Assembly (NCBI GenBank): GCA_002269645.1
Contig: NIVC01003919.1
Coordinates: forward strand, 5,668 to 69,667
From: Macrostomum lignano
Taxonomy: Eukaryota
Length of the DNA: 64,000 bases
Direction of reading: 5' to 3'
In this document: piece after piece, positions 52,701 to 55,074 of the stretch
Numbering within the stretch: position 1 is the first letter of the stretch
Layout of the letters: every line of letters begins with the position of its first letter
Program-made: the position numbers and the translations under genes
The notes under the pieces: model-generated
What the model was told of the DNA's origin: nothing
Databases searched by the model: none
Seen by the model: only the letters and a program-made list of their open reading frames with translations

Positions 52701-52988
52701 GTCCGGGCCCAACTTGAACCTGGCCAGGCAGTCGCCTAGAAGGCGGTCCAGCACCGGGTCCAGCATGTGCGGCTGCTCCTGGAACTGGTCCAATGTGTAC
52801 TTCAGCCGGTCCAGCAGCACCTCCATGGCGTGCTCGTCCGCGTGATCCCGGTCTAGGCGCGGGCCCGCCAGCTCCTGCGCCTCCGCCAGCATCTGCCCGG
52901 CGTCCAGCAGGCAGCCGGTGTGCACGTCGCCGAACCCTTCGTCATCGTCTTTAACGGCGGAGGATGCCGCCGCTGCTGCCGATTTGGC
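43736..52988 (-). CDS. TBCD: tubulin-specific chaperone D (~1215 aa; 9 exons; one missing base near 50815; no ATG at first exon)
   Basis: exons 52988-52348, 51016-50600, 49637-49347, 49084-48523, 48324-48015, 47319-46832, 46190-45805, 44926-44510, 43870-43736; motifs [54 protein letters not shown]. Confidence 0.95.
43895..44495. repeat. 29-bp intronic minisatellite
   Basis: unit catacttgactagggaatcccaatatgta. Confidence 0.95.
44985..45770. repeat. 28-bp intronic minisatellite
   Basis: unit tgggaggctggcccagcaactgaggatc. Confidence 0.95.
46262..46700. repeat. 22-bp intronic minisatellite
   Basis: unit gatagtacttacagtaacatat. Confidence 0.9.
47452..47905. repeat. 25-bp intronic minisatellite
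   Basis: unit caatgaaggtcaagcagtgaaagat. Confidence 0.95.
49678..50480. repeat. 20-bp intronic minisatellite
   Basis: unit atctacctgagcta(t/g)a(c/a)(c/t)tg. Confidence 0.95.
51105..51930. repeat. 30-bp intronic minisatellite (family shared with 16310-16630)
   Basis: unit gggtggagtt(t/g)ctgagatgtcaaggctcaa. Confidence 0.95.
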
Positions 52989-53029
52989 CTGAATGAGAGG
53001 GCAGGTGCTGGGGTTAGCCTGGGTGTTTC

Positions 53030-53500
53030 TGTCTTAGTGTCTTTGTCTGCCTGTCTTGTCTGTCTCAGTGTCTTTGTCTGCCTGTCTTGTCTGTCTCAGT
53101 GTCTTTGTCTGCCTGTCTTGTCTGTCTCAGTGTCTTTGTCTGCCTGTCTTGTCTGTCTCAGTGTCTTTGTCTGCCTGTCTTGTCTGTCTTAGTGTCTTTG
53201 TCTGCCTGTCTTGTCTGTCTTAGTGTCTGTCAGCCTGTCTTGTCTGTCTTAGTATCTGCCTTAGTTTCTGTCTTAGTGTCTGTCTTAGTGTCTGTCTTAG
53301 CGTCTGCCTTAGTGTCTGTCTTAGTATCTATCTGTCTTAGTGTCTGTCTGTCTGTCTGTCTTAGCGTCTGATTTAGCGTCTGCCTTAGTGTCTGTCTTAG
53401 TATCTATCTGTCTTAGTGTCTGTCTTAGTGTCTGTCTTAGTGTCTGTCTGTCTGTCTGTCTGTCTGTCTGTCTGTCTGTCTGTCTGTCTGTCAGCCTATC
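53030..53500. repeat. 31-bp, 12-bp and (GTCT)n compound repeat
   Basis: unit ctttgtctgcctgtcttgtctgtctcagtgt, then gtgtctgtctta and (gtct)n. Confidence 0.9.
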
Positions 53501-54555
53501 TATCTAGCATTCTGAGGGATAGGGATCTGGTCTAGAGCACAAATGGATAATACAGTAAGTGTACCGGACAAGCATGAACTATACTAAAGCCAACTTACTG
53601 GATCATATCCCTACAGCTGGAACTATGGTAACAGTTCGGCCTAAATTCCTAACAACTGAGCAGTCAAAATAAAATGAAGAAAAACAGAAAACCAGCAATT
53701 CCGCTAAGTTGGCAAAAGACTGCACCATTTTTACACTAGATGGCAAGGCTTCGGAAAAAAGAATTTCTGACTCCACAAAATTGGAGAAAGCCGTAAAAAA
53801 CAGATGAAGCATAGCAGCTGCACAGACAAAACCGATTGAGATCATAATCGGGCTATTTAACAGTAGAACTACTAAGGGGAAATTCCCCCTGACAATTTTT
53901 TGCTGATAAACAAAACTCCAGAACACGAGCTAACTCTCAAACAAGAATCAAGTCGCCAGCCCTCCGGACCATCGATATATTCAACCATTCTGCCAGAAGG
54001 CCTGATTTTTTCCATAAGCGCAAACTGTATTCAGTACACCCCTGTGCGCCAATCAGCACTGCGCCTCGGTGCCGGCTTAGCCTCCAAATCTCATCATCAC
54101 GTTGACCACATGTCTGCATCAGCACTGACTTCGTTGGTCACTGGCCTACACCCAGGCGGAGCATCTGGACCTTCAACAGGTGGCACCAGGTGACTATGGA
54201 CACCCTGATGCGAATTTCTCTAGTTTCGCTGATCAAGCCTCGACAGTGGGCAAGCCTCAACTGCTGGGCATCCTCAGCTGGTCTCTCAAGCATTCCGTCA
54301 CCACCCCGAAGCCGTCATCGATCCTCTGACAGAATCGTCAAATATCTCGACGGTCCGGAGGGCCGGCGACTTAATTCTTGTTTGAGAAAGTGCGCAAAAA
54401 AAGTTAGCCCGTATTCTGGAGTTTCATGTCTCTGCGTTGCTCCGTTCCGGCGCAGCAAAAAAAATCATGGGGGAATTCCTCCCCCCCCCGTGGTAGTTCG
54501 ACGGGCGGAAAAAGGTTCGGTATTCCTACTGTTAAGCAAAGCTCGGGGATGCTCG

Positions 54556-55005
54556 TCAACTCTTCAATCGCGCCAGAAACTTGTCGATAGCCGCCAGAGC
54601 TTCGGATTCCTCCCTGTAGAGACGGGTCTGCACCTCCGGGCACCCGGCAACCATGGAGGACAGGTGCTTGCCGTGCACCGGCTCTCCCTCGCTGTTCAGC
54701 CTAAACAGGCACAGCGTCGGCTTCTCCATGGCAACCGCTTGGCCAATCTCGTAGCCAACGCCAAGAGAGGGAATGCTGACCTCGGCCACTAGGCAGTCGC
54801 ACTCGGTCAGCCAGGCCATGTCCTGTCCGTAGATTTCCGTGTCCGACTTAAACCCCATGCGTGCCAGCCGCTCAGGCTTGGCGACATGCTCAGTGAGCAC
54901 ACAGCCATGCTTGGACAGGTGCTGCACCAGGCTCTCGTACAGGGCGGCATCGCCTCGGCCCGCCGCTATGGAGCCAGCAAAGTAAATCTTCAGCTGCTGG
55001 CTCGA
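54556..55005 (-). CDS. DNPH1: 2'-deoxynucleoside 5'-phosphate N-hydrolase (Rcl); single coding exon lacking an ATG at its start
   Basis: KIYFAGSIAAGR...VLTEHVA...D..WL..CD.LVAEVSIPSLGVGYEIGQA...LCLFR...LSSMV.G; acceptor atcttcag|tcg. Confidence 0.92.
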   Translation of the reverse strand, partial: SSQQLKIYFAGSIAAGRGDAALYESLVQHLSKHGCVLTEHVAKPERLARMGFKSDTEIYGQDMAWLTECDCLVAEVSIPSLGVGYEIGQAVAMEKPTLCLFRLNSEGEPVHGKHLSSMVAGCPEVQTRLYREESEALAAIDKFLARLKS

Positions 55006-55074
55006 CTGAAGATGTGCAATGGGTGACTGTCACTGGCTCATGTCTAATAGTTGAATTTTGAGGCAGTCTGGTAA

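Follow-up and report, generated by a model that had tools for sequence, protein, structure and literature searches.

How does translation start in two neighboring genes that both open directly at a splice acceptor, with no ATG at the head of either reading frame? The question is raised by a 64,000-nucleotide stretch of the Macrostomum lignano genome (assembly Mlig_3_7, GCA_002269645.1, contig NIVC01003919.1), hereafter the window, in which the genes for 2'-deoxynucleoside 5'-phosphate N-hydrolase (DNPH1) and tubulin-specific chaperone D (TBCD) lie head-to-tail on the minus strand. An earlier note on this stretch proposed that the two genes form a dicistronic unit resolved by spliced leader (SL) trans-splicing, the leader's terminal AUG providing both with their start codons. 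The sequence features described there were confirmed throughout. We estimate the probability of this reading, that is, DNPH1 and TBCD as a co-transcribed unit using the SL AUG, at about 0.7, with DNPH1 being the stronger of the two cases. All positions are those of the window, where position w corresponds to record position w+5667; the first bases after the two acceptors, 55005 for DNPH1 and 52988 for TBCD, are NIVC01003919.1:60672 and NIVC01003919.1:58655, respectively.

The window DNPH1 protein is identical to the protein encoded on NIVC01003919.1 (P0001) and identical to or 98% identical with the M. lignano entries in GCA_002269645.1; its paralogues PAA86794.1 and PAA92418.1 are both named 'BOX15_Mlig022662g4, partial'. 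Two further copies of the locus are present on large scaffolds, one on NIVC01000052.1 (L001) and the other on NIVC01000264.1 (L002), in both of which DNPH1 is followed by TBCD. A three-way alignment shows that the order of the genes and the layout of the spacer between them are the same across the copies, which differ from one another at only ~1-2% of sites.

The spliced leader of M. lignano

The earlier note relied on a leader that ends in AUG, and the species has one: M. lignano employs a single 35-nt SL, CGGTCTCTTACTGCGAAGACTCAATTTATTGCATG, the 3' end of which is ATG (PMC8629364). The leader closes with ...UUAUUGCAUG (in short form, ...TTGCATG), and the stretch TTATTGCATG would mark SL-bearing reads. 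The SL is carried by ~30% of the M. lignano genes, ~15% of the genes are placed in operons, and the published motif of the SL acceptors is [T/C]TNCAG (PMC8629364). The Macrostomum genomes paper describes the terminal ATG of the leader as a translation start codon (PMC10468722), and ATG ends every flatworm leader that has been reported (PMC12582326). The passages of two later papers that cite Cheng et al. 2006 credit that study with showing that the SL AUG serves as the initiator methionine codon in flatworms (PMC12582326, PMC9851317); in Schistosoma mansoni, the SL AUG lies in frame in 28% of those transcripts that are trans-spliced, and over 40 cDNAs require it (PMC9851317). No SL RNA gene was detected within the window, where the matches to the SL 3' end were at chance level, with three mismatches, and no Rfam match reached the gathering score.

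DNPH1 lacks a start codon in the genome

The product of the first gene shares ~50% identity with proteins that bear the name 2'-deoxynucleoside 5'-phosphate N-hydrolase and matches the PF05014 (Nuc_deoxyrib_tr) profile with an E-value of 1.6e-15 (57.7 bits against a cut-off of 28.8), in agreement with the identity assigned in the earlier note. On the minus strand, the junction reads ...cattgcacATCTTCAG|TCG AGC CAG CAG CTG AAG ATT TAC TTT GCT GGC TCC, with TCG at 55005 in phase 0, and the exon opens with TCGAGCCAG (also given as TCGAGCCAGCAG). Translation of the upstream sequence in the same frame yields ...LLDMSQ*QSPIAHLQ|SSQQLKIYFAGS, that is, a stop codon (55032-55030) precedes the acceptor by eight sense codons, with no ATG between them. 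The reading frame ends with a TGA at 54558-54556, and the first in-frame ATG is codon 50 (54858-54856), which, as had been noticed, lies past the conserved IYFAGS strand and inside the Pfam domain. The PF05014 match begins at residue 7, which corresponds to profile position 1, so that a start at codon 50 would cost the domain its first ~43 positions. Furthermore, among 110 Met-starting DNPH1 homologues, the initial Met precedes the IYFAG strand by a median of two residues and in no case follows it; therefore, codon 50 cannot be the start of DNPH1.

The GenBank coding sequence (CDS) of DNPH1 is 5'-partial and opens on the first base after the acceptor AG in all three copies. The annotation pipeline, TBONE, cuts RNA-seq-assembled transcripts at poly(A) sites and wherever mapped, SL-trimmed reads form peaks (PMC5730564), and accordingly, a 5'-partial open reading frame (ORF) that runs from the first base of the transcript is the expected output for an SL-AUG-dependent gene. 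Taken together, these observations make it very probable that DNPH1 depends on the SL AUG. The product predicted from the sequence upon SL addition is M-SSQQLKIYFAGS..., i.e. MSSQQLKIYFAGS...; none of the three members of the 90% cluster, all genome-derived, is a transcript-derived protein starting with MSSQQL.

A different source of the start codon, which was also mentioned in the earlier note, would be a cis-spliced upstream micro-exon that ends in ATG and serves DNPH1, TBCD or both. Such an exon is easily missed, and the ATG-GT combination occurs about once per kb by chance; however, it is absent from the RNA-seq-guided GenBank models of all three copies, which hold no upstream ATG exon, as well as from the independent, ML2-based UniRef models, which are either 5'-partial or start from the acceptor. 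No gene or exon is annotated within 9-10 kb upstream of DNPH1 in any of the three copies, and when ORFs of at least 80 aa were listed in the 55500-64000 region as candidates for an upstream coding gene that would donate the ATG, the two that were tested against Pfam gave no match. Given also that an ATG-terminated SL is in use on ~30% of the M. lignano genes, we regard the micro-exon as highly improbable.

Independent of the question of the start codon, horizontal transfer of DNPH1 was considered and rejected because the best bacterial match (53%) and the best animal match (Capitella, 52%) are equally distant.

The start of TBCD

The TBCD junction on the minus strand reads ...cctgccctCTCATTCAG|GCC AAA TCG GCA, where GCC (52988) immediately follows the pyrimidine-rich CCTGCCCTCTCATTCAG; exon 1 opens with GCCAAATCG (also given as GCCAAATCGGCAG). 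In line with the earlier note, the acceptor is in phase 0 and an in-frame stop codon occurs shortly upstream of it with no intervening ATG; this stop codon (53036-53034) is 15 sense codons away. The acceptor is kept in all three copies, as TCCAG in L001 and as TTCAG in L002 and the window, in each case before GCCAAATCG. The assignment of the gene to TBCD is borne out by matches to PF23579, PF25767 and PF12612: the precomputed Pfam matches place the ARM_TBCD, ARM_TBCD_2nd and TFCD_C domains across the 1,210-aa TBCD paralogue, and the members of the respective UniRef cluster are named 'Tubulin-specific chaperone D'. A homologue search with TBCD exon 1 yielded nothing at E<=1e-20, and a search with a conserved TBCD exon yielded short fragments only, with no M. 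lignano protein among them.

We rebuilt the L001 TBCD by enumeration of GT-AG junctions under the constraint of the 1,210-aa length and obtained an exact match to PAA92417.1 ('BOX15_Mlig022662g5, partial'), which validates the exon structure; the TBCD of L002 is PAA86793.1 ('Mlig013381g2, partial'). TBCD is 5'-partial in both of these intact copies, and all full-length public TBCD models lack a Met. Two UniRef models derived from the older assembly, neither of them with a Met, open with AKSAAA exactly at the acceptor (A0A1I8GJ14) and with IQAKSAA.

Thus, of the claim that both ORFs depend on the SL AUG, the part that concerns DNPH1 is well supported, whereas for TBCD the dependence is plausible only, given the presence of an ATG at codon 33 and the offset of the annotated CDS starts. 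Indeed, TBCD might start at this genomic ATG, with the SL joined at another AG or with ribosomes scanning past a weak SL AUG, and several observations weigh against our reading in this respect. A start at codon 33, which precedes the first Pfam-matched residue, 59, would shed only a poorly conserved N-terminal tail (residues 1-32), so that the missing ATG is less compelling than it is for DNPH1. The GenBank TBCD CDSs start downstream of the acceptor, by 15 nt in L001 (AAAASAV, L001:12176, homologous to window 52973) and by 27 nt in L002 (SAVKDDD, L002:12124, homologous to window 52961), and therefore the annotation, which differs between the copies, does not pin the exact SL site of TBCD, unlike that of DNPH1. 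The L001 CDS start agrees with an alternative acceptor, GGCAG|CAG; the AGs in this neighborhood (GGCAG|CAG|CGG, in GGCAGCAGCGG) would put the SL ATG out of frame. Finally, the context of the SL AUG is weak, with U at position -3.

Conversely, a good pyrimidine tract precedes CTCATTCAG, in contrast to the AGs further downstream, which lie within the purine-rich GGCAGCAGCGG. Splicing at these AGs would create an out-of-frame ORF that starts at the SL AUG and overlaps codon 33, hindering the translation of TBCD, and one of the public models opens exactly at the acceptor, as indicated above. Weighing these lines of evidence, we consider the codon-33 start a tentative alternative and somewhat favor the use of the SL AUG by TBCD, which would yield the predicted product MAKSAAAA.... 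With the SL-derived Met, the N-terminal length of the protein presumably matches that of human TBCD.

The intergenic spacer and co-transcription

The distance of 1.57 kb between the two same-strand neighbors, reported in the earlier note, corresponds to a spacer of 1,567 nt from the DNPH1 stop codon to the TBCD acceptor. From the DNPH1 stop codon onward, it is made up of 22 nt, an inverted-repeat element (679 nt), a unique stretch of 365 nt, tandem repeats amounting to 465 nt and a last 39 nt. The inverted-repeat element is found in all three copies; it starts only 22 nt past the DNPH1 stop codon, and therefore the 3' untranslated region of DNPH1 must run into it. BLAST of the spacer pieces detected no second copy of this element in roughly 100 kb compared. 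The gene calls of the three copies include no gene between DNPH1 and TBCD, and apart from the inverted-repeat element, the spacer contains no coding ORF.

In M. lignano, repeats inflate operon spacers, and in the published procedure for calling operons, repeats are subtracted and gene pairs less than 1 kb apart are classified as operonic (PMC8629364). Upon such subtraction (1,567 - 679 - 465), ~430 nt remain of the DNPH1-TBCD spacer, under the 1-kb criterion. The second line of evidence comes from the locus tags, in which the prefix denotes a cluster of assembled 'transcriptional units', and the genes cut from a unit take the suffixes g1, g2 and so on (PMC5730564). DNPH1 carries the tag Mlig022662g4, and the tags of TBCD are Mlig022662g5 (L001) and Mlig022662g3 (window contig). 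Because the two genes share no sequence, the common prefix implies that at least one assembled unit spans both, and hence the public annotation already handles DNPH1 and TBCD as one precursor. The shared prefix and the repeat-adjusted spacing thus support the dicistronic unit proposed in the earlier note.

Alternatively, both genes could be SL trans-spliced and use the SL AUG, yet belong to separate units, with a TBCD promoter located in the 1.57-kb spacer and the common prefix produced by read-through or by a merge across repeats during assembly. The raw spacer is about 15 times longer than the typical operon spacing in M. lignano (mode of ~100 nt), and ~60% of the SL genes lie outside operons (PMC8629364); the 365 nt of unique sequence within the spacer could house a promoter; and if the inverted-repeat element is not counted as a repeat, the adjusted spacer comes to ~1.1 kb, which exceeds the 1-kb limit. 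In addition, the StringTie units were built from reads that were permitted up to 1,000 multi-mappings (PMC5730564), and read-through or multi-mapping could give rise to an artefactual transcriptional unit where assembly crosses repeats. More generally, the transcript evidence both for SL joining and for co-transcription is second-hand, through annotation.

Separate units are countered by the common prefix, by the repeat-adjusted spacing and by the equal gene order and spacer layout in the three copies. Neither AATAAA nor ATTAAA is found between the two genes, which is weak evidence given that ~0.5 such hexamers would be expected (rough estimate). Overall, co-transcription of DNPH1 and TBCD appears moderately likely, and their separation into two units, less likely. 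Mlig022662, DNPH1 and TBCD have no entry in the supplementary tables of PMC8629364, PMC5730564 and PMC5816591, a full-text search for Mlig022662 was empty, and with regard to synteny in another flatworm, the TBCD contig of Paragonimus is too short to be informative.

A separate observation concerns UniRef100_A0A1I8FH57 (P0122, 574 aa, named DNPH1), which is homologous to window 55005-50600 and represents a chimeric DNPH1-TBCD model with no start Met. In this model, the DNPH1 stop codon is spliced out, and the path continues through an exon inside the inverted-repeat element to the TBCD acceptor.

A CAG-to-ATG change at the L001 acceptor

In the three-way alignment, the DNPH1 acceptor is ATCTTCAG in the window, ATTTTCAG (TTTTCAG) in L002 and ATTTTATG (TTTTATG) in L001. 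The L001 positions 9998-10000 (NIVC01000052.1 complement 439161-439163), which are homologous to window 55008-55006, read ATG|TCGAGCC: two adjacent substitutions (CA to AT) abolish the AG and make an in-frame ATG exactly at the position of the SL ATG. A chance double mutation at this site is very unlikely because the copies differ so little.

Pilon polishing of Mlig_3_7 drew on Illumina DNA reads as well as on RNA-seq reads mapped with STAR (PMC5730564, Methods). RNA reads that start with the last three SL bases (ATG|TCGAGCC...) would align end-to-end with two mismatches, and Pilon could then 'correct' the genome. The L001 ATG is probably a scar of such polishing with RNA-seq reads. In either case, scar or genuine mutation, the change indicates that the mRNA has a Met codon immediately before TCGAGCC, and as a scar it would also point to an SL-ATG|TCGAGCC junction. 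A real germline event, which would have made a genome-encoded start codon out of a trans-splice acceptor exactly where the SL AUG would sit, is quite improbable in our view. If it did occur, gene conversion from a reverse-transcribed SL-mRNA would be a possible route, and the locus would provide a snapshot of start codons shifting between SL-donated and genome-encoded ones among very recent duplicates. If the ATG is a scar, other trans-splice acceptors in Mlig_3_7 may likewise carry the end of the leader; this possible class of acceptor-overwriting errors would matter for transgene design and for the mapping of acceptors in M. lignano.

Integrity of the window copy

Relative to both other copies, the window TBCD carries a 1-nt deletion in exon 2 that shifts the reading frame. 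Because this deletion breaks the frame, the GenBank TBCD on NIVC01003919.1 is only a 650-aa C-terminal model (PAA49295.1). The deletion could represent a genuine null allele in a duplicated segment or else an assembly error that escaped correction; owing to the frameshift, the full-length protein may not be made from this copy, which is one more difficulty for our reading as far as the window itself is concerned.

Taken further, the frameshift could mark this entire copy of the locus as a degenerate duplicate or a haplotig, with gene starts that have no functional meaning, the more so as the contig is 69.7 kb long and the assembly is known for duplicated chromosome sequence. However, the window DNPH1 is intact and differs from the other copies in only three residues, both acceptors are intact as well, and the two intact copies on large scaffolds show this architecture too. 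Moreover, the loss of a single base could just as well stem from an assembly error. Degeneration of the window copy accordingly seems unlikely.

Proposed mechanism and implications

Under the preferred reading, i.e. a co-transcribed pair that uses the SL AUG, a promoter located upstream of DNPH1 would drive the transcription of one precursor covering DNPH1 and TBCD. The SL would then be joined by the spliceosome to the AG acceptor before each gene, and trans-splicing would discard the ATG-rich outron of DNPH1 as well as the repeat-laden spacer before TBCD. Since the coding frame follows either acceptor in phase 0, the terminal AUG of the leader would be codon 1, resulting in the two products given above. 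The anatomy of the sequence, the species, the leader, the 5'-partial public models and the common unit names are established; from these, we infer SL joining at exactly these two AGs, initiation at the SL AUG and the lack of a separate TBCD promoter.

The DNPH1-TBCD pair is an ordinary instance of known phenomena, considering that SL-AUG initiation was published for flatworms in 2006 and that SL trans-splicing and operons of M. lignano have been catalogued genome-wide; a literature search found no paper naming this pair. As a textbook case of the SL AUG acting as the initiator and of an operon resolved by the SL, with an annotation that already joins both genes, the pair has little biological weight. 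Nevertheless, it explains the 'partial' label on the M. lignano DNPH1 and TBCD entries, suggesting that these would be complete once the SL Met is added, and flags UniProt A0A1I8FH57 as a chimeric model. The sole thread with some novelty is the replacement of CAG by ATG in L001, for which an assembly artefact is the most likely explanation.

Features of the locus

The features discussed above are collected in Table 1.

Table 1. Features of the DNPH1-TBCD locus in window coordinates
Feature	Position	Strand	Basis and remarks
Minisatellite, 32 bp, 12.6 copies, with many ATGs	55078..55483	minus	In the outron upstream of DNPH1; tandem-repeat table
In-frame TGA	55030..55032	minus	Upstream of the DNPH1 acceptor; shuts the frame 8 sense codons before the exon
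DNPH1 trans-splice acceptor, ATCTTCAG	55006..55013	minus	AG at 55007-55006; phase 0 with the ORF; fits [T/C]TNCAG
DNPH1 (2'-deoxynucleoside 5'-phosphate N-hydrolase)	54556..55005	minus	Single exon, 149 codons + stop, without a genomic start codon
Inverted-repeat element, ~679 bp, TTAA-flanked	53857..54535		Collinear inverted arms 53857-53997 and 54325-54535; resembles a miniature inverted-repeat transposable element or a foldback element
Non-repetitive part of the spacer, ~365 nt	53493..53856	minus	Sole candidate place for an internal TBCD promoter; BLAST of spacer pieces
Compound tandem repeats, 4-, 12-, 31- and 76-bp periods	53028..53492	minus	Directly upstream of the TBCD acceptor; length varies between copies
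TBCD acceptor, CTCATTCAG	52989..52997	minus	AG at 52990-52989; pyrimidine-rich tract before it; phase 0 with the ORF
TBCD exon 1, 641 nt	52348..52988	minus	Donor GT at 52347-52346; translation and Pfam ARM_TBCD
First genomic in-frame ATG of TBCD, codon 33	52890..52892	minus	Alternative start site
Remaining TBCD exons and introns	43704..52347	minus	ORF segments, tandem repeats, gene calls at the paralogous loci
1-nt deletion in TBCD exon 2	50792..50793	minus	GGCACA-CGAAGG vs GGCACACCGAAGG; tblastn frame change and alignment

Tandem repeats are abundant around both genes. Minisatellites flank DNPH1 on both sides (53028-55483), and their copy numbers, including that of the array in the DNPH1 outron, vary among the three genomic copies. 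Almost every TBCD intron also contains a minisatellite (43893-51931), with 20 bp x40, 25 bp x18, 22 bp x20, 28 bp x28, 29 bp x21 and 30 bp x28 arrays.

Two other elements were identified elsewhere in the window. An uninterrupted 864-codon ORF on the minus strand (18025-20616) encodes a P-element/THAP9-like transposase that contains the THAP, Tnp_P_element, TNP-like RNase H and GTP-binding insertion domains, all exceeding the Pfam cut-offs. A satellite with a unit of ~640 bp and at least 11 repeats occupies ~4486-11789, as judged from the periodicity of minus-strand ORFs (the period is beyond the limit of the tandem-repeat tool), and each unit holds the same open frame of ~101 codons (VRPNKCCSKNRPGCNV...).

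Comparison with known systems

The proposed organization resembles the SL2-type operons of Caenorhabditis elegans in that a polycistronic precursor is resolved through trans-splicing at the downstream gene. The difference is that M. lignano has one SL, with no SL1/SL2 specialization; furthermore, nematode leaders do not end in AUG, and the spacers in nematode operons are typically ~100 nt long.

Among the operons of M. lignano itself (Wudarski et al. 2017, PMC5730564; Ustyantsev and Berezikov 2021, PMC8629364), the pair stands at the long end with respect to its raw spacer and qualifies only after the subtraction of repeats. In other respects, it is alike: the genes are adjacent and on the same strand, they have a common transcriptional-unit prefix, and the spacer is swollen by repeats. 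Two-gene operons make up the commonest class in this species (75%), and trans-splicing extends to the first gene in most operons (PMC8629364).

The closest precedent for the start codons is provided by the flatworm mRNAs described by Cheng, Cohen, Ndegwa and Davis in 2006 (J Biol Chem 281:733). That case comes from a parasitic trematode and includes cDNA and translation evidence, whereas the pair in the free-living M. lignano is known from the genome and its annotation. The two share a leader that ends in AUG, an acceptor in phase 0 and a recipient ORF without an AUG upstream of the conserved residues.

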